A DNA stretch of 64,000 nt from contig CM074820.1 of the NCBI GenBank assembly GCA_037447605.1, positions 992,001 to 1,056,000 of the forward strand, written 5' to 3'. Shown here one piece after another: positions 1-61,118 of the stretch (position 1 is its first letter; every line of letters starts with the position of its first letter). The stretch is from Zygnema circumcarinatum SAG 698-1b (Eukaryota; Plantae; Zygnematophyceae). Under the pieces are notes generated by a model. The model did no database searches and was not told the DNA's origin. It saw only the letters and a list, made by a program, of their open reading frames with translations. A program made the translations under genes and the position numbers.

Positions 1-3000
1 TTGTGTTTCTTTTTTATGTTTCAGTATTTATCTAACGCGTCATTATCCCTCACAAGCGTTGCAAGTACGACTATTTTATCATCAACTTCTGGCCTTTTCA
101 CACTTTTCTTTGGAGTCAGCTTAGGGCAAGACTCCCTGACTACGGCAAAAGTCGTAGCGGTTTTGGTGACAATTGCTGGAGTCATTATGACAGAGCTTGG
201 GAAGTCGACCGCTTCTGATGACCAACTCCTATCAGGAGACAGAATGCCTGGCGACACAGCGGGAGAGTCCGGGTAAGCGATGATTTCGATCATGTTACTT
301 GATTAGAGGAAGGGTAGAAAGGCCCAAAGCACGGGTAGAGATCATACCGCTAGCTACTTTTTGGGCTTTTTCTGGACTAAGCTTGGAAAGTTAGCATGGA
401 AAGTTACTTGTTGGCCAGTTCAAAATCAAAAGTTTTTGTTATGTAGTAACTATACATACGGCTGAAGGTCTTGTATGACCTGAATTTGCTGAACACGTCG
501 ACTGTAGTGTTCCATTCAGTTCCTGGCAGGCACAACAATGTGGAAAGTAGTCCTGTAGTTTGATCTGGTTGGTGCTTATCAAAGAGTATCCGACCAATAT
601 TAATGGCTCACCCTAGCTCTCCTCATTTCTGTTGATGACTTGAAAAGGTGGTAGTTCTTATGCTTAGGGCAGTCCATTCAACGTTAATTCGTGGTTCATT
701 AAAAGGCCGATGTTGACTGATGTAGGTTGGCGGGCCATACTCTTGTTGGAGATCTATTTGGCCTTGCATCTGCAGCCTCCTACGGCTTTTATACGAGTAG
801 GTTGATCCCTCCCGTTCCATTCACATGTCACTGTCGGGAAAAGCTCAAGTCCGATACACCATTTGGGTGTAAGTTATTTTGCGTCGACTGAGGAGTCGCA
901 TAACCCATCCTTACAGAATAAATCGTTCTATGTCAACCGCCCACTCTACTTGCTCAATAGCATTTTAGCCAAACACCACACATTTTAGCCACACTACCTA
1001 CGCATCTACACTAATCACCTACCTTCCCATTCCTCCACCATCCTTTGCCGCAACTTCCCTTTCCTCTATCGCTCTGTCTCTGTTTGAGGATTTTGTATAC
1101 ATCGTCCCAGAGTTCGGCTAAGATATGTTCCATTACCTTAGCTTGGTCGACCATTTGAAATAAATCAAGTTCATTCCACTTTGTTTCAGTCGCAAGAGTG
1201 AACTCTCCTATCAAACATGCCTCAGTGTATGAATTTAAATGCCAATAATATTTCTATTTTCCTTCGCTATGAGGTCTTAACGAAACAAACCTGACATGAG
1301 CGTTTTTATGTTTGTTTGAGTGGGTTCAGTAATGCTAAAGAAATATGCTGGCGAGGAGGAGGGCAAGGAGGCTAAAGCCGACATGCAGAAGCTTTTTGGC
1401 TGCATCGGCTTGGTCACTTTTTTCGGCTTATGGTGGTTGGGTGAGCGTTTCCTAATTCCAAGTAGACAGGCCACTGTTGCACTTTAGCAGCTCACGTGTT
1501 TTGACGTTTCAGAGCGTTTGAGGAAGTTTGTCACAACTTAGCACGAAAAAGTGAGCCACACTCTTAAGTTTCCTTAGACGAAAGTAGGGGGAGCAACTGC
1601 GTTGATGTTTCATCAAGATCATCCTCAGAACAACAAGTAGTCATTCAGCAAGGCAGTTCGAGAGCATAGTGCTGTGCCTTTCCCTTATAATGGCTTGTTT
1701 CCTTTTCTTTGGAAGACAGGTGGAATTCGTAATCATGCCGTGAAATGATAAAACTAACTCAAACTCGACATCTGGCTTTTAACTTAAGCTGTAGTATCGC
1801 TTTTGCTCACCTACATTACTGTCAATGTACTTTTGCAGGAATTCCACTGATCTTTGTCGGCTGGGAGCCCTCATTTGGGCTTCCGAGGTCAGTAGGACTC
1901 GATGAAGATATTCTGGCAAACAGCCTTATAGGAAGTGTGGTCTCTGATTATTTCTGGTAAGTCGTCCCTTATCATTGTCTGTCTCAGATGCGTGTGACAT
2001 TTCTTCCATCATGTATTATCGTCCACCCCCTAAAGAGGCTGACAATTGCTCCTTTTATACTCTCAGCTAATCTTGGGTTATAAATCTGAACACAATCATC
2101 ACAATCACCAGCCGTTGACTTGGCTTTTATTGTTAGTTGAGATTGTACATCCTGAATCAGACAAGGAGTAAAGCATCGGCTTTATAGATCTGGAATCTGA
2201 ATGGGCAGCATCGCTGGAGGTGCAGGGCATTGTCGGTAGTTTGGACTACCCCTCTGGTGGCGACTCTTGGCCTGTCCCTCACTATTCCTCTCGCCATGCT
2301 GGCGGACATGGTCATGCATGGGCGAAGCTATTCATTTGTATACATTTTGGGCTCCCTTCAGGTACGAGTTTGGGACTTCTTCGAATTCGTGAGTCTTTGT
2401 ATGTGAAGAATGTGCAATTAGAAGAAATGAATTAGTGTCTGAAGGAATGTCATAGAAGTGAAGAAACGTGGTTATAATAGTACAGACAGAAAGTGTTTCT
2501 CTTTCAATTTCCGCCTTTCTCTCGTGCCTTCGTTCCTTGTCTCGTCGCCTCCATTTCCTCTCTTTCCTTCATGCTCACCTTCCTTGACCGTTTCCCCTTC
2601 CTTTGCCCCCACACCACCCTCCCACGGTTTTTAGGTTTATTAGGGTTTTAGGGTTCCGTTTCCTCCCTCGTCCCAGCATCTCTGCCACCTTCCTTCTCTT
2701 CATGTTCATTGCACTTCGTTTCTGTTCCCTCTAGCACACTATCTCCACTCTCTTCCCTCCGCTTTTGTCATAACATGCTCAGTCTTTAAACTCTTCAGCC
2801 CTTTCAGCACTCTAGTATATCGTTGTCGCTGTTATTCTTTCCTCGAATTTCAATCCCTGTTTTGTTTGCTGACGCCACTTCATGTTTCCTCTTCTGCTCC
2901 ACTCTGTGTTCTGTCCCCTGCTCCGTACGGTGTTTTCTTTGCAGGTGTTTGGAGGCTTTCTAGTGGCCAACTTAGCTGATAGATGTACTGCACGGTCAAA

Positions 3001-3019
3001 GCCGACGGCTGAATTGTAG
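1..3019 (+). CDS. SLC35F5/THI74-like EamA (drug/metabolite) transporter, 5'-partial, multi-exon
   Basis: Exons about <1-272, 726-796, 1330-1440, 1839-1956, 2226-2361 and 2945-3019, with GT-AG sites and matching phases. They give ...TILSSTSGLFTLF...GDLFGLASAASYGFYT-IMLKKYAGEE...DMQKLFGCIG...VSDYFW-ALSVVWTTPLVATLGLSLTIPLAMLAD...FLVANLAD..*, typical of plant SLC35F5-like proteins. Confidence 0.88.
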
Positions 3020-3384
3020 TGCTCACTCACTAGCACGAAAGTTTTTTTCTCATATTGTTTGCTCCGCTATTCTTGTTAGACCCATTTGATAAAGTTTGCA
3101 GCTCTACTTGCCTTGCACGTCCTGCTGTTTGTAGAGTGTCTATTTTAGAACTGTTAGTGTCTCTGTTGGACAGCCTTCATTTGTTTTTTGGTAGTCAGCT
3201 TCTCTCTACTGCAGCACCTTGCCAGGCATGCGAGGCAGAATGAGGGGTAGTCACATTTAGGATTCAGTTTTGTCTAAGTGATTTTAAATTCGTGTTTGCT
3301 CCTTCTTGGGCCCTTCTTGGACAACTTTCCCAATCACTATGCTCAACAGTCATAGACTTTAGAAGCATTCAACTTGCGAGAGAA

Positions 3385-3465
3385 TGATCTGGCATTGAAC
3401 TGACGATGGCGAGGCCATCAAATGGTCATGGACGACGACAAAATGTAGTAGTACCAGGGAATCCG
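3385..3465 (-). repeat. Short 3'-terminal fragment of the CRE-type retroelement
   Basis: Reverse complement reads ...ccatgaccatttgatggcctcgccatcgtcagttcaatgcc, matching the element 3' end at 5010-5060. Confidence 0.7.
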
Positions 3466-4624: not shown

Positions 4625-5077
4625 ATCGTAATGAGTTTGTTCCATTGGCGGTTGAAATTTTTGGCTGCTTTGATGCTCGGTTGGAAGTCTTCCTTCGCCA
4701 GTGCGCCCATCGCTCCTTCGAGATGCACGGCCCCGGAAGCCCTCCCCCAGCGATCCTTACAACTTTTTATCGACAACGCATTTCCGTCGCCTTACAGCGG
4801 TGTCTTGCTTCCACGATCCTTCGACGTGCCGCAGTTGTTGGGACCCGTCCCGGTGGTCTTCCGGCCCTTCCCGCGCGTACTGCGCCCCACATTGGCGACC
4901 TTTGCGGCTGCTTCTAGTGCCGTGTTGTTGCGCCTAGAAGTTGAGTTCCGTTTCAAGGCTTTCTCTTGGTCCTTATGTCCGTTGTGACCGCTTCTTTTGG
5001 TTCCTTATGTCGATTTTCTCCATGTACATTTGATGGCCTTGCCATCGTGAGTTCAATCAAACATCATTTTCCTTGCC
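4624..5077 (+). mobile_element. Inverted 3'-terminal segment of the CRE-type non-LTR retrotransposon (RLE C-terminus plus 3' UTR)
   Basis: Encodes YRNEFVPLAVEIFG...FYRQRISVALQRCLASTIL...CF* (stop at 4917), the usual CRE C-terminal block, followed by about 160 bp of 3' UTR. Orientation is opposite to the rest of the element. Confidence 0.85.
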
Positions 5078-8048: not shown

Positions 8049-8241
8049 TAGGGATCGCAAATGTACATGGATAAAATCGACATAGGGAACCAGAGGAAGC
8101 GGTCACAAAGGACATAAGGACAACGAGAAAGCCTTGAAACGGAAATCTACTTCTATGCTCAACAACACGGCCCTAGAAGCAGCCGCCAAGGTCGCCGATG
8201 TACGGCGCAACACGCGCAGGAAGGGGCGGGAGACCACCGGG

Positions 8242-10213: not shown

Positions 10214-11258
10214 ATGTCTCGCAGATACGATAATCGTACAACAACCTTCTCGCCAGATGGCCGCCTCTTCCAAGTGGAGTATGCCATGGAGGCTATCAGT
10301 CACGCAGGCGCTGCAGTTGGAATTCTTGCAGTAGATGGCGTTGTGCTCGCAGCTGAGAAGAGGATCACCTCCAAGCTTTTGGAAACGTCGAAATCCACCG
10401 AGAAGATGTACAAGATTGACGACCACGTGGCTGCCGCAGTTGCAGGAATCACTGCAGATGCGAACATTCTGATCAACACGGCGCGATTAGCTGCACAGCG
10501 CTACTTGTTTGCATATCAGGTCAGGAGGGTCCTTAGGGTTTCCGACTGACGTAGTTAATTCTGCTTTTGCACCGCATTTTTTTTTTTGCTGCTGCTGCAC
10601 GCTCCGTGGCATGTGATATGCCTTTTCCTTAATTTTCTTCTTGCCCAAAATCAAGGAGGAGCATGGGTTCACAGTTTTGTTTTGGTTTTAGTTTTCGATC
10701 AACCTTCAGATTTGGTCGAATTTTCTTCTTCGCAAGATAGACAGTGCTGGCAACTTTGTTGTCACACCCTGCTCAGCGTATTGACAAGTCCTTCCCCTTG
10801 CGCTTGTGCAGGAGGCCATGCCCGTGGAGCAGCTCGTGCAAGCCCTGTGTGACACTAAGCAGGGCTACACGCAATTCGGTGGTCTGCGCCCTTTTGGTGT
10901 CTCTTTTCTTTTTGCAGGATGGGATAAGAACTTTAAATTCCAGCTTTATCAGAGTGATCCGAGTGGAAACTATGGCGGTTGGAAGGCCACCGCGATTGGA
11001 GCAAATAACCAAGCAGCGCAGTCTATTCTAAAGCAGGACTATAAGGATGACTTGGACTTGGAAGGAGCAGTGGGTTTGGCCCTGAAGGTGCTGAGCAAGA
11101 CCATGGACAGCACGGTGCTTTCGTCAGAAAAGATTGAGCTTGCACAGGTCAGCTTGGATTCGAACAAGCAGCCCATTTATAGGGTGTTTGCGGCGAAGGA
11201 ACTAGATGAGCTTTTGAAGAAGCACAATATTTCTCAACCAAAGGAAGAAGAGAGATAG
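10214..11258 (+). CDS. PAC1: 20S proteasome subunit alpha-3 (PSMA4/PAC1), 2 exons (10214-10519, 10812-11258)
   Basis: [32 protein letters not shown]...YLFAYQ|[38 protein letters not shown]...[13 protein letters not shown]; canonical GT-AG intron. Confidence 0.97.
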
Positions 11259-12501
11259 TTTCACTGTGCCTTTCCCTGTCTCTCCTTGTGCACCTCCTTG
11301 TACAATTTTTTTCTCCTTATAGTGGTGCTACAAATATGGAGCAACAGTCTCAAGCCTCGCCATGGTGACACATTCTACTGTTGATTTTTGCACTCAGCGA
11401 ATGTGAGATGGATCACCTTTCTACCTTTGAATGCCCACGTTTTCAGCAGATGCTCGGATGTGGCTTTGTTTGTTGTTGAACGGACCGCAGTATAGGAGCT
11501 CAGCAGATCTCGAAAGCAATCATGTGCTGCTCCGAGACAACAGTATTTAGATAACTAAGTAAAGTGCTTCACATTCGTTGTCAGTAGGCCTGCCTGCCAA
11601 GGGGAGGCCTCCCGGCATGAGCATCATGCGCTAATGTGCAAATCCTGCCAGGGATGCCTCGCCCTCCGTTCTCCCACTCTTGCCCTTCTCGCGAATCTGT
11701 CGTCAGATGTGTGTGATTCTGAAGTATTGCGCTCAGAAAATCCCTGAACCCTGAACTCTAAGCCCTAAAGACCCTGAAAACCCTTACTGCATTTAGAAGA
11801 TCTTTATTTCTAGCAGTAGTCCGCTTCAAACTGGAAAGATCCCATGACTGTCTCGTTTCCATTTTCTTATTTTATTTTTTTTTTGTTTGTAAAGACCCAA
11901 AAAACCGAATTAAGAACTGGTGTCATCTTTAGCCCATTGGCAGAACTTTTTGTCACATGTAATCTCACACAAGCGGAGATTCAATGTCGCTCTTAAAGCC
12001 GGCCGATCAGGTTTAAAAATTACAAAATTGAAAAACAACGTTCACTTGTTTTTTCAGCGGAAAAAAGTAACTTTTTGGAACGAGATTCAAAGGAGGGCCT
12101 CCCCTGCCCCTCCGTCCGAATGGCTTGACTACAAACTCCACTCGTTCCTCTTTACAGAGTCGCAATTTATTCCCTCCCTTTCGCCCCCTCACGACCTGAA
12201 CATCGCCGTACTCTACATCACTGCATGCAGCATCATCATCATCATTCTGCCCTCTACATCATCGCACTTTCGACATAACGACATATCATCGTGCCACACC
12301 GTCGTCCCTACAGCCTCATCATCTCCTAAGAAAAGGAGTGTTATCAAGATGGGGGGGGAAAAAGAAAAAGACAATGAAGCCAAGTGGTGGCTGAACGAGT
12401 TTCCTTATGAGCCGTAAGTGGGCAGCTTCTTCCATCTCAAAGCAGAGCATCCCCATCTTGATCGCCTTTACTTTAGTAAAAGCACAAAAGCTCCTCCCTC
12501 T

Positions 12502-13206
12502 CTATTGGTCCCACTCCTCGCCATCGCTCTTTGGAGAGTCCCCCCGTGACATTTTCAGCCTCTTTATTCCTTTTCGAAGAGCACTTCCCCAGGGTGTCCC
12601 TCCTCCGTTGGGTCTCCTCTCATCCCCTCCTCCCTCCTCACTCTCCTTCTCCTTCACCGCCGCCCTCTTCACAGGTCGCAATGCAGCATGCCTTGCCTGA
12701 ATTGCCGCCTGCAGGTCGTCTGCACTTCCAAACCCCCCAGGACCCCCCCCCCCCCCACCACCACTTTTGCCTCTACCAGTCCTTTTCAAGAGGGCAAAGG
12801 GTGTTTCAGACCCTCCTCCTCTCTGTTCCTCTCCCCCTCTCTTCCCCCCCATTGAACCTTCCGGATTCACTACCCTCCCCGACTCTGCCCTTCTCCTTGC
12901 TGCTGCAGCGACTGCTTCAGCGAGGTCACGACCCGAGGGTGGTGCTGCCTTTTGCGGTGCTTTTGCAGGTCTTAAAGCAGCTTTGGAGGGTCCTTTGGAG
13001 ACCCCTGAAGGAGGAGGGGGAGGAGGAGGAGGGGGGGGAGGTCGCCGTGGAGGGGGAGGGGGAGGGGGAGGAGGAGGAGGAGGAGGAGGGGGAGGGAGGT
13101 GGGGAGGGGGAGGAGCTTTCATATTGTTTTGCTGTTCTCTTCCTGCTCTTAAAGAGTCAATGCTAACACCTACATCCGTGAGGATTTTCAGAACATCAAC
13201 TGAGCC
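12502..13206 (-). other. Terminal exon encoding poly-proline + WH2-like + central helix + acidic-Trp motif (WASP-family VCA-like)
   Basis: About 35 prolines, then [18 protein letters not shown] (WH2-like), [14 protein letters not shown] (central-like) and SDGEEWDQ* (acidic with Trp near the C-terminus). Acceptor TTTTCTGCAG| at 13207. Confidence 0.7.
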
Positions 13207-13977
13207 CTGCAGAAAAGAGGAGCTTCAGTTAGTATCTGCTTCTTCGTGAAACAAGGGTTTTTGGCAATACGAAAGTATCTGTTGTACACTTTCATGGTTT
13301 CATGAGAGAGGAGTTCTTTTCGCTCTTATTGAAACTTCCGTTGTCTTAAAACGGGGAAAATGTTTTACGGACCTCTATTGCGAGCTGAGAAAATAACTCC
13401 TGTGAGATTTTCTCCCCATCGAACTTCTGTGAAGACCCGCATGCGATCAGGCTGAGAAAATCCTGTACAAGCAACACACATAGTCAGTTTTTCATCCAAA
13501 CAAGAGAAGTTCCGGACTTACAATGCAAGAAAAAGAGCTCTCTTGAAGTAAGATTGGCACACTGCATGTGTAGAAAAGTTTCTTCATAACTGCCCCAGCA
13601 CATTCCTCATGGTTCACAAGTAGTTACATGGTATTACTATCCAGCAGAGGGAACTTTTCAGATAGCCAATCCAATCTCGCATTCATAACAACCCAAATGA
13701 AACTCACTTGCAAGAACCGTTTGAAGGTGGGAGCTTCAATAGTCGGAGAGGGAGGGCTATGACTCGGAGTTGGTATTAAGTCGGGACACAAAAAGGGATG
13801 CTTTAACAAGTCAGGAATGGTAATGCGAGCAGTTGGGCTGTGGACGAGGCATCGCTTTATGGAGTCAAGCAGCCAAGGGTTGGGCAGAGGGGGAAAGGTG
13901 ACTTCGTGGTTGGGATTTGTCAAAGCCTGCAATGAGCAAACATGCATGGTTTGAGTATCACGCTCTCATATCTCTTC

Positions 13978-14013
<36 letters not shown>

Positions 14014-14045
14014 AGAGAAGAGAGAGAGATATATAGAGAGAGATG

Positions 14046-14085
<40 letters not shown>

Positions 14086-17000
14086 GAGAGAGAGAGAGAG
14101 AGAGAAAGCGAGAGAGAGAGATATATATATAGAGAGAGAGAGAGAGAGAAAGGAAGAGAGTGAGAGAGAAAGAGAGAGAGAGAGAGGAAGAGGTTAGAGG
14201 ACGCCTTAGCAGAAAGAAAGAAAGAAAGAAAAGAAGTAAGAAAGGAAGAAGGAACAAAAAAGCATACGAGGATTTTTTGGAACGTTGGTAGGTGCGAAAG
14301 CGGTGTTTCTCCGTATGCCATTTGATAAAGTATGCACCCGAGAGACCATACATCCGATGCTCGGTGGATGCTACCTCCGTCATTGCTGACATCAGCATCC
14401 TCTGATAATTGGTTGCAAGCTACAGCTTCCGGAGACATGTAGTTGAGTGTGCCGGCCTGCAATAAAAGCACACATTTTCTCTCTCTCAAATTCTTGCAAA
14501 ACTCAGCTTTTATCGCAGATTCTACTTCAGCTTCTCTATACCATTTTCAGATTTCTGGAGAGAGTGTTTTCTAGATAACAGGAAAACTGAGTTTTTCTGC
14601 CATTTCAACGTGCATATATAGCGACCTTAAAGCTAACCACACTCGTTTGAAAAGAGATTCCTCGTGAATAATTCATGAAGAGTTACATGCTAAACGTAGT
14701 CATGGAAATGAAGGCACTGAATGAGAGAGAGACAAACCTGCGATTCTCGTTGTTCGATCTCTGTTGCACCTTTTGGTATTGTTCGTGCAATTCCAAAGTC
14801 GATCAACTTCAGCTCGCCTTGCACGAGAAGGAAGTTGGCCGGTTTAAGGTCGCCATGGACTATGCGAGCTTCATGTATGGTATGCACAGCTTGCAGCATT
14901 TTCTGAGTCAATATACGCACTCAAGAAAAAGAATGAGGAGAGTATCAACTTTGAATGGACTTTATGCAGCGTTTCATCAGCCGATCGAGATAGTACTAAA
15001 ATCCGTTATTGGCCATATCCTTAAAAAAAACATATTTTTAGCTTTTTTCTTTTGTCCTTAGGTCCTTTGTGACCACTTCCTCGTGGTTCCCCATGATGAT
15101 TTTGTCCATGTACATTTGATGGCATCATCACCATCGTGAGATCAATGCCATATCCTCCCCCATTTTAAGTCTTTTATCATTGAGGGCACTTTCCTGAGCA
15201 CATTACCTGCCAGTAAAACCGCAAGAAATTGTCGTCAATATGAAGACTTGCTTTGTCGACTTTAGGGCTCTGCACTCTCTGTAAAAGACTGGCGAGGTCA
15301 ATCTCTCCAAACTCCAATACGAGGTAGATCAGACCGGACTGAGGGAGCACCTGCACAGCCGATCACAATGAATGGTTATTGATGAAAGGTCTTACAACAA
15401 AGGGGAACTGACTACATTCAAACCCGCTCAAATCAAGCATTTCAAAGAAGTTGTTTCAAGAATTCTAATGATACAGCTGAAGCTAAACACTTCGGGGAGG
15501 GTCTAGGCTTTAAGGATGTTTATTCTATTCTTGTATTGAAGAAAGTAATGCAGTTGACTACACACCTTCCTATCATCAGAGAACAATTTGGCAGCTGTTC
15601 CTCACCTGTGAATCGATCAGTTGAATAATGTTTTTTTGCCCTCGTAACCTCTCCAAGAAGTTAATCTCTTCCAGAAACCCTTGTGCTACCTTTGGACCTC
15701 TGCCAGACAGTCTGATTTGCTTCAAAGCGTAAACTTGCCGGTTGGGAGCAATCACTTTGTACACCTTCGAGCTTCCTCCTCTCCCAACCAATACAAGCTT
15801 CTGATAGACAACATTGTTCACTACCACTGCGTTTCCATCTGTTCTCGTTTGTGGGGTCTCAAGACTGCCCTCTCTACCGGCCATACAGCCCATTGGAGAG
15901 GGAGAGATCAGCTCGGCACATGCAAAAGCTTGCCTTTCAGGTATCGCTGAAAGCATTTCTACATTAACACATGTTTGACTAGGTTGAACAGAAGTTTCCG
16001 GTGGATTTGATGCTGTTGTGGCACTCTCAAACTCAGCTGCAATCCCCCTTCCAGAATCGTTCTCTAAAACATTTCCTTCTTCCGTAGACCTTACCCGTGT
16101 TGCATCTGCGGCTGCGTCTATCTGAATACTTTGTTCCTCTGAATGCTGTTGAATGTCCAAACTGTGAATGTTTTGAAGCTGCTCTGTGTTCGTTTCTTTG
16201 GGGGGAGAGGAAGGTCTAGATTCTGAATTCTCTGAATTAGGCATCAGAGCATCAGGAGAAGGGTCTTCCATTCTCAGAGCGGCCACTTCAGCAGCCGGCA
16301 CTCGTCGTGCAGGTCCCGAAGACAGTTTGATTGCTGGAGAAATATGCACAAAGCTACGATTAGAGCTCCTTTCCGTAGCCACAAGGGGAAGTTTGCAAGG
16401 GGGTTACTTTCGTGAGAGTCGCTATTGTAAAAATCAAGCAATGAGAAGCGGCAACTGCAGACAGAGATGATAAGGAGATGGTCTTTCAAAGCATGATGCA
16501 GCACAATGCAAGAAACTAGGTCGTTGCCTTCATCAAGGAGGAGTGGAATTATCAACTTCTTCAGAAAAAAAGAGTAATCCAGCACTTTTTACTGAAGTTA
16601 TTAGCTGTAATTGTACGTTTGTAGCATTCCCCTTCCAGCCAAATATGGAGAAGGAAATGAAAGGACTTCTATTTTGTTTAGTGCCTTACATCAGGATCAC
16701 CTTCTTTCCCCTTTCCTTTTGATCGAAACTTCTGCTGGTATGACAAATGTACACATCGAGAAGGAAAATGCTAAGTGGCGTGCTGAACATCTGCCTTTCC
16801 TTTTACTATCAAAAGACTGCTGGGGCAATCGATGCCTCAGATTTGAGAAGCCAAACCGGCAACACTGTAAGGATGACTCACCAGCAAATTTTTTTCGTTT
16901 TTCTGAAGCTTGTCGTCTGGAGAGTCGAACTATGTTTCTTTCAATAACAAGCGGCTTAGTCTGTTGCCCCGAAAAGTAGTTCATCTGCGAAGAATTAACG

Positions 17001-17563
17001 GACATTATGGGTTCCTCCATAATCATAGCAGATGTCTCATCGAGCCTTGGAAAGATCCCTCCATGATCTGCTCCTATCTGCACGCTCTGTCCTTCTGCAA
17101 TACTGTATGGAGCTGGCTGTACGGCCAGGGACTGCGCTTCTATGTCACGAACACGGCAATTACCTCCAGCCGTTCCAGACCTTCCTATCATATCCTTCAT
17201 AATACCCCTTCCATTCTTATGCTGAAGAAATTTCTGCTCTGCTTCGCTAAGCCTCATGTCATCAGCTCGAAATGAGTCGCCCATGTCTCTCTCCAGCAAA
17301 CTTCTGGTACTTGGAAATGCCTGCTCCTTCCCCTCCTCCAGCACCCTATTCATCTGGAAAACATTCTGCCTTTCAAAAATGGTTCCAAGTTCCCTATCCC
17401 TATTCAAAAATCTTTTCTCTACAGCTCCGCAATGACCTAATCCGCCTGTAAGCTCCCCTCCGTTAAAGTGCGCTGGCGCGAGCGGCCTATTTTGCCTTCT
17501 TCCAAGGCGAGAAGCGCTATTTAGGCTTCTCTCTCCGAGATTCTCCTTGTCGAACTCCGCCAT
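12502..17563 (-). CDS. MPS1: MPS1/TTK spindle-checkpoint kinase with an apparent C-terminal poly-Pro/WH2/CA (VCA-like) extension
   Basis: Starts MAEFDKENL (KEN box). Kinase exons: [18 protein letters not shown]...ALKQI...EINFL (ends 15606); [12 protein letters not shown]...LRFYWQ (about 15351-15207); [23 protein letters not shown] (about 14900-14737); [10 protein letters not shown]...[12 protein letters not shown] (about 14458-14267); LTNPNHE...DLLKHPF (13926-13708). Then phase-0 exons 13462-13373 and 13206-12502. N-terminal exon limits are approximate. Confidence 0.9.
13975..14185. repeat. (GA)n/(GAGAGT)n microsatellite in an MPS1 intron
   Basis: Direct inspection. Similar (GA)n tracts occur at 17626-17680 and 21386-21538. 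Confidence 0.95.
15045..15155 (+). repeat. CRE 3'-terminal fragment (about 110 bp) in an MPS1 intron
   Basis: gtccttaggtcctttgtgaccacttcctcgtggttccccatgatgattttgtccatgtacatttgatggcatcatcaccatcgtgagatcaatgcc aligns with 4965-5060. Confidence 0.8.
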
Positions 17564-17630
17564 GGCTTCCCACCTCCCTGTCGGGCCAGCAAAGAAACGA
17601 TATGTGTGTGCGTGCGTGCCACGGAGAGAG

Positions 17631-17683
<53 letters not shown>

Positions 17684-17709
17684 CCTTTCCCTCCACTTTC
17701 CCTTTAAAC

Positions 17710-17719
17710 TCTAACGGCT
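17710..17719 (+). promoter_or_regulatory. MSA element (TCTAACGGCT) in the divergent MPS1/MFD promoter
   Basis: Exact match to YCYAACGGYY, about 150 bp upstream of the MPS1 ATG. Confidence 0.55.
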
Positions 17720-18010
17720 AGTTCTTGACCTCTTGTTCCGTGCACCTAATTCCGTCCCGTGTTGAACAGCACGGGACCGGGATCCAACAGATCGGCCGTA
17801 CAAGAACTTTTGTCGTCAAGCCTGTTCCATGCTGTGTCGTTCTACGCTGCTCCGTGCCGAGTAACAGCAAAGAGCGCCCCTTGGAGCCCCCCAGCCTTCC
17901 CTGGAGGTGCGGCTGGCGGGGCAGATTAGGGTTAGGGCTGCTGCAAGGTTAAGGTTAGGGTTAGGGTTAGGGCTTAAGGGGAGGGGAGGGGAGGGGAGCT
18001 TCTCTGCAGG

Positions 18011-25664
<7,654 letters not shown>

Positions 25665-26250: not shown

Positions 26251-26300
26251 TTTTGTCCATGTACATCTGATGGCCTCGCCATCGTGAGATCAATGCCACA
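26251..26300 (+). repeat. CRE 3'-terminal fragment
   Basis: ttttgtccatgtacatctgatggcctcgccatcgtgagatcaatgccac. Confidence 0.8.
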
Positions 26301-48200: not shown

Positions 48201-51200
48201 ATTCCCATAGATATGCAGCTGCATGTCCGGATGGTTTCCTTTAATGGACCCCAAAGCGAGTTTTGTTAAGCTGACACCCTTGAAACCTCTCTCTACCTCA
48301 CTCCCTCTACCTTACTCCCTCTACCTCACTCCCTCTACCTCACTCCCTCTACCTCTCTCCTTGTTTACCTCATGTGGAATTTTCAGGTGCGCATTCACCA
48401 GCTACAGCAGCAGCTTATTGCGGCCACTGCGGCTGCAGAGAATGCAGCAGCCATGGCTGCCGTGTCGAGACCAGGGTACACTATTCCGACTGATAAAGAG
48501 TCCGACTGGAGAAAGGAGTACGAAAAAGCTCAAGAGGAAATTGCTCGACTCAAAGGGGAGGTTCAGAAGAACAGTGAGCTGGCTGAGGTGAGTTTAACCT
48601 GTCACTCAGTGGGGTTTTGCAGTGTGTAAACTCTATTATACGAGTTCATGGAAGCAATATTTTTACATCTGACAACTAAGATGTGTATCTAAGGGGTCCA
48701 CTCGCATAAATACACAACCAATAGCACAGCTGGTTGCTTACCAGAACTATGATTATAGAAAACTCAGTGGGTATGACGATATGCCGGTGCATTAGTTTGA
48801 CGTTGGTGTTCTTATTAATCCAGAAAATGGAAGAAAGGTAAAAACCCACATTCAGAATTTCACTCGTAGTGTGGGGTTACCTGCTAGAGCTTAAATGACT
48901 AATTTTAAACAATGCAGTGAACTCGCGATTGATATATATCTTGTGTATTGTATCGGCTTTGCAACAGTTGCAATCGTCACAATACCCTGATACTGTCATC
49001 AATTACAACATTTATTCTCTTGGAGTCAATGGGGCGGATCTGATATCCAATAAAAATCAAATGTTTGAAAGACATGCGCTGAAGGAAGCGTGTTTGGGTG
49101 TTCTTTTCTAAAAAATAAATGTTAATGAGGTGTCTTTCTATGGGTATTTTGTGGCACGAGATACAGAGGCTCAATCAGGAAAATGAGCGACTTGTGACTG
49201 ATCTCATGGAGAAGACGGCAAAGAAGGAATCAGAAGCCATACCTGCAGAGGATAGCGAGGCCAATGATGATGAGGTAAAATCACTACCACTGACTTTAGC
49301 ACCCCTTCATGCTATGCTTTCTTCTTTTCTGCTCCTTAAGTTAGCGTGATGTGGAGTTTCGTTCAAATCAGTGGAGTAGGATTTTGTGGCATGCTATAAC
49401 TGCATGGGTTTCGAGAGGGAGAGAGAAAGGTGTTGTTGAGCCTAGGCGTTGCTTTCAGTTCATAGCATTTTTCTTTAATCCTTCGGTGTTCCGCGAGCAG
49501 TTCCTCGTGGTTTCCCATGATGATTTTCTCCATGTACATTTGATGGTATCATCGCCATCATGAAATCAATTCGACATCTCTCTCCATACATACATTTATA
49601 CATTCATGTATACACATAGATACACACATATATACATGCATATGCACATTCATAATAGTGGAAAGCTGCGACTTGCACTGAAGCTTTAGGTTGGGAACGA
49701 ACCAACCTTTCGTTTGATGTGTGATCAGGGAAATGAAAAACAGGAGATGAAGCTGCAGCCGAGCCATTCATCCAAGTATTGGCTGAATTTGAAGTCCAAG
49801 AGCATTACACAAAGCATGGAGGAGAAGCCGCGCCTTCCTCGCCCTCATAATGAGCTTCGTGTTTCAGAGGCAGCAGAGCTTCATCTCACAGGGAGGGAGA
49901 GCAGAATGAAGCGTAACCAAACTGAAGATGGGGCTCAGCTCATTACCCTCCTAGACACCTTCGAATTTGACAAATTTGAAAATTCGACAGACATCGCAGA
50001 ACGAGCAAACAAAGTGTTGCGGGAGGTGAGTGAAGGGCTGATTCCATATATGTTGAATGATTGTCGGAAGTTTTATAGGGTTGGAATAGAGTGAATGCAG
50101 GTAGGGTCCAAGATTATCTATCACTCAGTGTATTCTGTTGCGGGAGTTGGATGCATTGAACAGTTTCTGGCAACAGTGGAGACACATAAGAAGGGGGAGA
50201 AAACAAGTGAAGGCGAGCTATTGGCGGAGCTTCGAGACTCGGTCTTTTCATTTCTTGGAAGAGTGCAGCCGAGATGTCAATTAGATGGCAACCTTGTAGC
50301 ACAATTGCGGCTCCTGTACCTCAAAGGACTTCTTGCAAAAATGCCGGATTTGAAGCCAAACAAGGTGCATGCTCTTTCTTTCATTCTGCGATATAGTAGA
50401 GTCTGAATCACCTGAAAAAGGAGCTTTTACAAGTCAATAAATGTCTGCTTCAAGGAGAAAGGCTGTCTCCAACAGTGCATCAGCAACCATTGAACGAATG
50501 CATAACCTTGCTTAAAATGCTACTATTAGATTATTGATGATTATTATTCTGTTGATTGTATGTGGGTTTGCTGCAGATTCCCGAAGTTTGTCAGTTCTTG
50601 GAGAGGGAGGGTGGTGAAGGGAAGACTGTGGCAGGCAAGAAGGCTCACTTCACAACGACTACCCCTATGGGGCCGGGCCCCATTCCGGGAGTTTTTCCAA
50701 TGAGAGTTTCCTTGAAGCCGGAGAAGAAGCTGCAAAAATTGCTCTCCTTTGGGTCCAAGAATAAGGTTGAAGCTACAACGGAGGCCAAGGTAGGTCATTC
50801 TTCTTTTCAGATATGCAACTAACAAAAGATTAGCATTCTATAGCATACATCATAGATATAGGTTCTCGATTAGATTAGTACAGGAAAGAGACAAAGCCAA
50901 ATGTTTTTAGTGTCTTCCACTTGTAATTGCTTTTAGGGGGGATAGCTTCTCTCTTCAGACGCCGAAATCAATCATGCCAACATCATACGTGTAGCTTGTA
51001 TGCAACTGCGAATAAAGCTACTTCGAATTACAACAGAATAATTCAGTCTGAATACATTCATGTTGAACGCTAAAATGATAAATCTGAATTTCAAATATAG
51101 AGAGCTCGCTGTGTGACTGCGTCCTTCTTGCCTGCCCTTATCACATACCGAACATTTTAGCACAATTTCTGTCATATTTACCTAAAAACCCTTTGCCCTA

Positions 51201-60856: not shown

Positions 60857-61118
60857 GTGGCATTGATCTCTCGATGGCGATGATGCCATCAAATGTAGAT
60901 GGACAAAACTATCATGGGAAACCACGAGAAAATAACTGGTTGCAAAGGACCTAAGCGCAAAAGAAAAACGCTAGGAGCGAAAAACCCTAAAAACCTTTCT
61001 TCCTTTCTTTCCTCATCAACGGCCTCCTCCTCGGCGACCAGTTATTCGTGGTTCCCCATAATGATTTTGTCGATGTACATTTTATGGCATTGCCATCGTG
61101 AGATCAATACCACATCAC
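60857..61118. repeat. Two CRE 3'-terminal fragments in inverted orientation (60857-60955 minus, 61034-61118 plus)
   Basis: Both match the 15045-15155 copy; their 3' ends point outward around a spacer of about 80 bp. Confidence 0.8.

Follow-up and report, generated by a model that had tools for sequence, protein, structure and literature searches.

Zygnema circumcarinatum SAG 698-1b encodes a form of the kinase Mps1/TTK that continues into a C-terminal tail, whose elements follow one another as in the WASP-family activators of the Arp2/3 complex. The gene occupies 17617-12139 on the minus strand of the window, by which we mean the whole stretch of 64,000 nucleotides analysed here (contig CM074820.1, positions 992,001 to 1,056,000), and all coordinates are those of the window. 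It is one gene, with one spliced mRNA and a protein of 973 residues. The fusion of kinase and tail is real, conserved and under selection, as confirmed by RNA contigs and by related proteins. Judged from the motifs of its tail, the protein may well work like a WASP-family member. An earlier note, made from this DNA alone, had read the tail as a poly-proline region followed by WH2, central and acidic (VCA) motifs. The existence of the fusion is settled by RNA and comparative data, and the VCA reading is weighed below against its alternatives.

In public RNA runs of this organism, 0.59-0.67 of the sequence words sampled from 12300-14000 are present, near the exon share of that segment. Assembled RNA contigs from four runs were aligned to 12050-17900. 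Contig depth is zero within the introns, and spliced joints are found at all 7 of the 7 introns (contigs of runs X2, X3 and X5). At the two junctions leading from the kinase to the tail, both GT..AG on the minus strand, the joint 13461/13707 occurs in contigs of X2 and X3, and the joint 13205/13372 in contigs of X2, X3 and X5, which represent three runs from two studies. A single contig of 2,430 nt, X2 record 9, links eight exons from 17617 to 13114 with 0 mismatches (segments 17617-16882, 16333-15603, 15347-15207, 14902-14737, 14455-14267, 13925-13707, 13461-13372 and 13205-13114). The spliced coding sequence stays in frame throughout, from the ATG at 17563 over 973 codons for amino acids. 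The exon structure drawn up in the earlier note is borne out by these data: the exon 13926-13708 (protein end ...FKRFLQ) ends in phase 0 at CAA/GTGAGT with no stop codon, the 90-nt phase-0 exon at 13462-13373 (...QLAIE) is present and spliced in RNA contigs, the acceptor at 13207 opens 234 in-frame codons, and the predicted splices 13708>13462 and 13373>13206 are seen in RNA, so that the kinase and the tail do belong to one gene and one mRNA.

The last exon begins at 13206, directly after the acceptor AG at 13208-13207 (...ttctgcag/G), and its 234 codons run to the stop codon TAG at 12504-12502. It contains 43 prolines, 33 of them in one run of 35 residues; the earlier note had given about 35 in all. 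This run is encoded by a CCN repeat (13004-13113), which was skipped in the contig alignment and at which X2 record 9 ends. Beyond the repeat, contigs of X5 span 12385-12743 and 12788-12981, and contigs of X1 span 12139-12321 and 12308-12567. The rest of the tail and a 3' untranslated region (UTR) of about 360 nt are therefore transcribed; the 3' UTR (12139..12501, minus strand) is at least about 360 nt long. About 85 nt of the CCN repeat (12982-13066) has no bridging contig among those listed; the genomic open reading frame (ORF) is unbroken across this segment. In run X5, the only contig across the intron 13463-13707 retains it, and the next intron is spliced in the same contig. Translated through this intron, the protein would end 27 codons past the kinase exon and lack both the C-terminal extension and the tail. 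This contig could be pre-mRNA or a regulated tail-less isoform.

The catalytic core is complete, comprising GRGGSSKV (residue 411), YALK (429), HGDLKPAN (534), DFG (553) and SPEA (581), with Pkinase hits in Pfam. All exons are on the minus strand. Exon 1 (16882..17617), defined by X2 record 9 and the reading frame, contributes at least 54 nt of 5' UTR, the start codon at 17563 and residues 1-227, in which Pfam finds nothing. Exon 2 (15606..16333) carries the remainder of the N-terminal region and the kinase N-lobe with the GRGGSSKV and YALK motifs (Pkinase E 8e-9). Exon 3 (15207..15350) also belongs to the kinase domain; it is delimited by GT..AG boundaries and by the RNA joints 15347/15603 and 14902/15207. 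The catalytic loop HGDLKPAN and the DFG motif lie in exon 4 (14738..14902), whose best matches in the PDB are human TTK, with 56 bits against 32 for the next family (Aurora B). Exon 5 (14268..14456), with the activation segment and P+1 loop, also matches human TTK best, with 43 bits against 24 for the next kinase. Exon 6 (13708..13926) ends the C-lobe. On these grounds, the protein is by sequence an Mps1/TTK kinase with intact catalytic motifs. It is laid out as an N-terminal region of about 400 residues, a kinase domain at about residues 400-690, a helical extension at 710-750 and a tail of about 220 residues (about 751-973). Pfam gave no match over residues 1-288; the kinetochore-targeting N-terminal extension and TPR region of Mps1 occurs N-terminally in many lineages.

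The segment between kinase and tail has relatives of its own. A search with a profile built from the last kinase exon and the linker retrieved the Mps1 fragments P0005 and P0006 from JGI metagenomes, which lie on contig L003. The L003 kinase is 43-48% identical to the kinase of the window, and the alignment extends through the 90-nt exon and into the first codons of the last exon. Exon 7 (13373..13462, residues 710-739), spliced on both sides, aligns with the C-terminus of P0005 and P0006, and the start of the last exon (13174..13206, residues 740-750) aligns with '...EGTDDILKFLK' and stop, the natural C-terminus of P0006. The stop of the L003 Mps1, after the same residues, aligns to residue 748 of our protein, which runs about 225 residues further. 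Downstream of this stop on L003 there is no Pro-rich ORF, and an opposite-strand gene lies 319 nt away. The L003 gene itself (L003:199-1228) is almost intron-less and compact, with a GC content of 30%, and comes from a microeukaryote in the JGI metagenomes. Residues 710-750 are thus, as aligned, a C-terminal extension (CTE) common to other Mps1 proteins. The alignments also suggest that some Mps1 kinases have long carried this helical extension after the kinase (...ILKFLK at the stop), as a feature so far undescribed.

It follows from the alignment with P0005 and P0006 that both questioned junctions sit inside ancestral Mps1 sequence. The proposal that everything after the kinase exon was added to Mps1 holds for about residues 751-973; the shared extension takes in the whole 90-nt exon and 11 codons at the start of the last one. 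The CTE end (GSVDVLKIL) and the tail lie within one exon and one ORF. For this reason alone a two-gene explanation is untenable, and a separate tail gene, which would have overturned the fusion, is very improbable.

We then have the question of how widespread the tail is. An exhaustive phmmer search with the 166 residues after the poly-proline run, against 1.84 billion cluster representatives, returned a sole match, P0001 (E 2e-18, 48% identity). A profile search with the resulting two-sequence alignment against 5.8 billion proteins gave P0001 only, among the best 8,000 candidates, with low-complexity words saturating the search. In the JGI metagenomes, the tail profile produced 598 pattern matches, 0 of them confirmed. 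The apparent rarity of the tail is bounded by database coverage, as this organism's own proteins are absent from the protein collection.

P0001 is encoded on L001, a contig of an ENA assembly, and its 90%-cluster mate P0002 on L002 of the same assembly. By tblastn with the spliced protein, Mps1 kinase exons lie directly upstream of the tail on both contigs, and L002 contains the entire kinase. On both, the exon that carries the kinase end continues through the CTE linker. P0002 is an unbroken ORF of 222 residues that runs from the extension end through a Pro-rich run and four motifs, here called M1 to M4, to the C-terminus. L001 and L002 share 82.5% DNA identity, and over 144 codons of the tail their dN/dS ratio is 0.155 (dS 0.31), which indicates purifying selection on the tail. 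L001, a contig labelled 2x, shifts frame by 1 nt at L001:1370-1392, past the Pro-rich part and ahead of M1; the ORF on L002 is uninterrupted there. The frame change is probably an assembly error, and it could also mark a decaying second copy. A 32-nt intron was considered as its cause and rejected, since the wrong frame would result.

Identity between the window and P0002 is concentrated in the motifs, reaching 77% in M1 and 74% in M2, with 14-29% in the linkers. The poly-proline run (13009..13113, minus strand as for all that follow; residues 771-805) has a shorter Pro-rich counterpart at the same place in P0002. M1 (12871..12936, residues 830-851) is an Ala-rich predicted helix followed by RRR. 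M2 (12664..12744, core residues 901-918) is the WH2-like motif, with the conserved pattern GGF.SADD.QAAI.AR.A.LRPV. M3 (12550..12597, residues 943-958) is a basic amphipathic helix resembling a C region, whose core PW...LRKG..RL is invariant across the three sequences. M4 (12502..12528, including the stop) is the acidic C-terminus with a Trp, reading ...SDGEEWDQ in the window and ...TPSEWE in P0001 and P0002, of which the E-W pair is invariant. All motifs named in the earlier note, as well as the terminal SDGEEWDQ, are present in the last exon. They coincide with the blocks conserved in the orthologue and stand in the expected order of Pro-rich region, WH2-like motif, amphipathic helix and acidic end with Trp.

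In the definition of Kollmar et al. (2012, PMC3298513), members of the WASP family have a VCA module downstream of a Pro-rich region. In that definition, the C domain has three large hydrophobic residues spaced by three residues, an R/K doublet or triplet and a further large hydrophobic residue, and the A domain is acidic with a Trp at or near its end (PMC3298513). Two of these features are plainly there: the Pro-rich region, with 33 prolines in 35 residues at 771-805 and a Pro-rich counterpart in P0002, and the acidic C-terminus, in which the Trp stands three residues from the end. M2 fits WH2 at the A-A pair, the I, the Q/K position, the 5-residue linker and L-R-x-V. A relaxed WH2 pattern, with one N-terminal hydrophobic residue and any residue at the second basic position, matches M2 in all three sequences, including FQAAIKARQATLRPV. 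M3 reads W-x3-L-x3-I-KR-L in the window and W-x3-L-x3-V-ER-L in the orthologues. Relaxed patterns for WH2, C and A match in order in 3 of 3 sequences and in 0 of 200,000 shuffled tails, a figure that is optimistic because the patterns were relaxed after the sequence had been seen.

AlphaFold, run with the three-sequence alignment, predicts a mostly disordered chain (mean predicted local distance difference test score, pLDDT, 58). It places helices at residues 831-847 in M1, 901-914 in M2 and 944-959 in M3, the latter with the highest pLDDT of the tail. The predicted M2 helix stops before an extended LRPV, as in WH2 motifs. Meanwhile, the best clusters in an ESM-Atlas feature search bear WH2 motifs, namely a WHAMM C-terminal fragment and fungal WH2 fragments. 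The scores are 0.73 for the whole last exon, 0.85 for the part after the poly-proline run, and 0.86, 0.85 and 0.82 for M2-M4 alone. Lower-ranked clusters include thymosin, Cobl, SCAR3-like, WASL and VASP. By the calibration of the tool, scores below 0.9 such as these are a lead only.

Several observations weigh against the VCA assignment. None of the three sequences contains the strict WASP-family WH2 pattern. M2 has a Gln at the second large-hydrophobic position (L-Q), its linker contains no V/I/F, and it reads LRPV in place of L[KR][KR]V, with a Pro at the second basic position of LKKV. M3 departs from the strict C pattern, with a Trp at the first V/I/L/M position, and in the orthologues only one basic residue follows the third hydrophobic residue. 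The acidic region is short and mildly acidic, with 5-6 D/E in the last 15 residues, below typical A regions. The Pfam WH2 profile (PF02205) has no match to the window tail, its sub-pieces or P0002, even at E<=10. On the tail, M1, M2, M2-M4 and P0002, Pfam returned noise only (Mito_fiss_reg at E 0.049 on the Pro-rich part, zf_Hakai and DUF6186). Searches of the PDB by phmmer and profile, with the tail, an M2-M4 profile, M1 and M2, found no WH2 or VCA chain and only chance matches, to ribosomal L2, an integrase linker, Noc2 and a designed protein. In addition, the conservation is based on three sequences from two sources. The VCA identity proposed earlier is thus upheld for the Pro-rich region and the acidic Trp end, and does not extend to the strict WH2 and C patterns of Kollmar et al. 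(2012). As the strict WH2 pattern is absent, we refrain from assigning the protein to the WASP family. A WH2 regular expression in ELM style also matched M2; it was set aside since it hits 4% of shuffled tails and 58% of whole-protein shuffles. Readings of M2 as an IQ motif and of M1 as an RVxF docking site for the phosphatase PP1 were rejected by eye, key positions being missing or unconserved in the orthologue.

With a chance that we place slightly short of even, the tail engages both G-actin and Arp2/3, as a nucleation-promoting factor (NPF) or at least as a tether to Arp2/3 and actin. Its order, spacing and chemistry would match the Pro-rich region and V-C-A output module of class I NPFs, the parts being the poly-proline run, the M2 helix with LRPV, then M3 at a distance of about 25 residues, and finally the acidic end with its Trp. 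In such a protein, the poly-proline run would recruit profilin-actin, M2 would bind a G-actin monomer in the manner of WH2, and M3 together with M4 would dock on the Arp2/3 complex. M1, with its Ala-rich helix and RRR, is possibly a second actin-contacting element. Where Mps1 is concentrated and dimerised, branched actin might then be nucleated, or the kinase might be held on Arp2/3 and actin structures. Going by what is established for the Mps1 family, kinetochores, spindle poles and the division plane are candidate sites for this. The fuller proposal is that the protein represents a new class of Arp2/3 NPF with Mps1 as its regulatory N-terminal domain, such that clustering or activation at kinetochores, spindle poles or the division site triggers branched-actin nucleation; we regard this as rather unlikely.

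Of the alternatives, the one that survives best is that the motifs are unrelated to actin. On this view, the tail would be a disordered regulatory or localisation region with other partners, and its likeness to a VCA coincidental. M3 might bind calmodulin or act as a nuclear localisation signal, M1 and M2 might dock checkpoint or phosphatase partners, the poly-proline run might bind SH3, WW or GYF domains, and the acidic Trp end might contact an adaptor. What makes this view credible is M3, which would also pass as a calmodulin-binding helix: it is of the typical basic, amphipathic, Trp-anchored kind, with a net charge of +3 to +5 and the Trp/hydrophobic spacing of calmodulin targets, which is a further point against its assignment as a C region. 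Short motifs in low-complexity tails readily mimic one another, no profile method recognises a WH2, the strict patterns fail, and the ESM-Atlas scores stay under the confidence line of 0.9. On the other hand, four independent elements stand after the poly-proline run in canonical order and spacing, all of them conserved, and the ESM-Atlas hits are consistently WH2-type actin binders across three sub-queries, with scores that rise once the poly-proline run is left out. We consider a role unrelated to actin unlikely, and still credible.

Less likely again is a tail that binds actin with no activation of Arp2/3, as an Ena/VASP EVH2-like or verprolin/WIP-like module. Binding of profilin-actin, G-actin or filaments would anchor the kinase or promote elongation, and M3 and M4 would serve another purpose. 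M2 is indeed nearer to the G-actin-binding (GAB) site of VASP than to the strict WASP-family WH2 pattern, M1 loosely resembles the F-actin-binding (FAB) site of VASP (..AMLARRRKA compared with ..AAAARRRAE), VASP clusters appear among the ESM-Atlas hits, and the failed strict C pattern and short acidic stretch fit such a module as well. Yet in VASP the GAB precedes the FAB, the reverse of M1 followed by M2, an EVH1 domain is lacking, and AlphaFold predicts a helix of only 16 residues where a C-terminal tetramerisation coiled coil would be expected. M3 and the terminal E-W are conserved as expected of functional CA elements, and an acidic C-terminus whose Trp stands three residues from the end is a classic Arp2/3-binding feature (PMC3298513).

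The weakest alternative, very improbable and largely refuted, is an artefact of two genes or mis-assembly that leaves the tail outside the kinase protein: the unbridged 85 nt or so of the poly-proline repeat, the intron-retaining X5 contig with its stop 27 codons past the kinase exon and the L001 frame change could be cited for it, and against it stand the splicing of kinase exon, 90-nt exon and tail exon in contigs of three runs, the exon and ORF that the tail shares with the conserved extension end, the uninterrupted P0002 ORF from extension to EW end on a contig with the whole kinase, and the linker in the same exon as the kinase end on L001 and L002.

If the assignment of the tail as a VCA-like module holds, it would be a known output module on an unprecedented N-terminal partner. 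Full-text literature searches turned up nothing relevant on kinase-VCA fusions or on Mps1 combined with WH2, and the survey of Kollmar et al. mentions no kinase-bearing member (PMC3298513). SCAR/WAVE is regarded as almost the only activator of Arp2/3 in the plant lineage (PMC3689024), and Volvox and Chlamydomonas have Arp2/3 with no recognisable WASP-family activator (PMC3298513). A second, SCAR-independent activator of Arp2/3 in the plant lineage would follow if the reading is true, and the fusion would also add to the N-terminal domains that evolution has joined to the VCA module. In other eukaryotes, Arp2/3-dependent actin has recently been implicated in chromosome capture and kinetochore-spindle attachment, with no clear molecular checkpoint link in the available portions of these reports (PMC12222016, PMC6520610, PMC6080919). 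A true fusion of Mps1 with a VCA-like module would wire checkpoint signalling directly to actin assembly, and would make this link testable with one protein and a few point mutants. Even if the tail makes no contact with Arp2/3, it is a well-defined case of conserved short linear motifs added to a core cell-cycle kinase.

Further features lie in and around the gene. Long CT/GA-type microsatellite tracts occupy 13971-14258, in the intron before the last kinase exon, and 17618-17688, just upstream of the mRNA 5' end; both were skipped as repeats in the contig alignment. In the intron between exons 3 and 4, a short element at 15055-15160 has an RNA word depth of 1,260-3,400 in 4 of 4 runs, compared with 5-27 for the exons, and is joined in RNA to many different flanking sequences. 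Six further copies in the window (26-71 nt, 88-96% identity) lie at about 5012-5037, 8058-8120, 26251-26298, 49501-49570, 60858-60928 and 61046-61090. The element is a dispersed short repeat, resembling a miniature inverted-repeat transposable element (MITE) or a short interspersed element (SINE), within abundant transcripts. Rfam gave no match over the whole window, and none for this element. On the plus strand, a divergent neighbour (18011-18757) has its start about 400 bp beyond the Mps1 5' end, on the upstream side. The CarD/TRCF RID domain encoded in the first exon of this neighbour (Pfam E 4e-5) suggests an Mfd/TRCF-like gene, and the two genes may share a bidirectional promoter region. 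Downstream, a convergent neighbour (10806-11258, plus strand) codes for part of a 20S proteasome subunit, namely its C-terminal half (Pfam Proteasome E 1e-31).

Among known systems, the class I NPFs of the WASP family (WASP/N-WASP, WAVE/SCAR, WASH, WHAMM, JMY, WAML and WAWH) are close in layout. They share with our protein the Pro-rich region and a C-terminal order of V-, C- and A-like elements at similar spacing, in which the helix with L-R-x-V would correspond to V, the amphipathic basic helix to C and the acidic end with Trp to A. The WASP family consists of the VCA output module joined to family-specific N-terminal domains (PMC3298513). Here, by contrast, the N-terminus is an Mps1/TTK kinase and not WH1, SCAR homology domain (SHD), WAHD or another known regulatory domain. 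The tail further differs from the family patterns in Q for L/M, LRPV for LKKV, W as the first C hydrophobic residue and a short acidic region, and it has an extra conserved helix, M1, between the poly-proline run and the WH2-like motif.

Plant SCAR/WAVE proteins are the sole established family of Arp2/3 activators in the plant lineage and carry a C-terminal WA domain; they have an N-terminal SHD and no Pro-rich region (PMC3689024). The likeness consists in the SCAR3-like cluster among the ESM-Atlas hits. In contrast to plant SCARs, our protein has a kinase and a long poly-proline run, no SHD, and no detected sequence homology to SCAR.

The EVH2 region of Ena/VASP likewise has poly-proline followed by a WH2-like site. 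M2, with L-Q-A-A-I...L-R-P-V, compares with L-A-A-A-I...L-R-K-V in the GAB of human VASP (PMC10340426), a proven G-actin-binding WH2-like site, APGLAAAIAGAKLRKVS (PMC10340426), so that the deviation of M2 from the WASP-type helix is also present in VASP GAB. M1 loosely recalls the VASP FAB (...MLARRRKAT) (PMC10340426). Membership in Ena/VASP is not supported: Pfam finds no WH1/EVH1 or VASP_tetra match and the model contains no C-terminal coiled coil. The FAB-like and GAB-like elements are in reversed order here, and an acidic Trp end is not an Ena/VASP feature.

With canonical Mps1/TTK, our protein shares the kinase (43-48% identity to the Mps1 of one other eukaryote) and the helical C-terminal extension; relative to that other Mps1, which ends at the equivalent of residue 748, it has about 225 extra residues. 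Precedents for Arp2/3-nucleated actin in chromosome capture and segregation include, in the portions of the reports available, an atypical Plasmodium Arp2/3 with a kinetochore-associated factor, centrosomal actin in mitosis and chromosome patches in starfish oocytes (PMC12222016, PMC13340494, PMC6520610, PMC6080919). In those systems, as far as these portions describe them, the link to the division machinery is indirect or runs via other proteins, and none of them joins a checkpoint kinase covalently to a VCA-like module, which is the arrangement that the Zygnema protein may represent.

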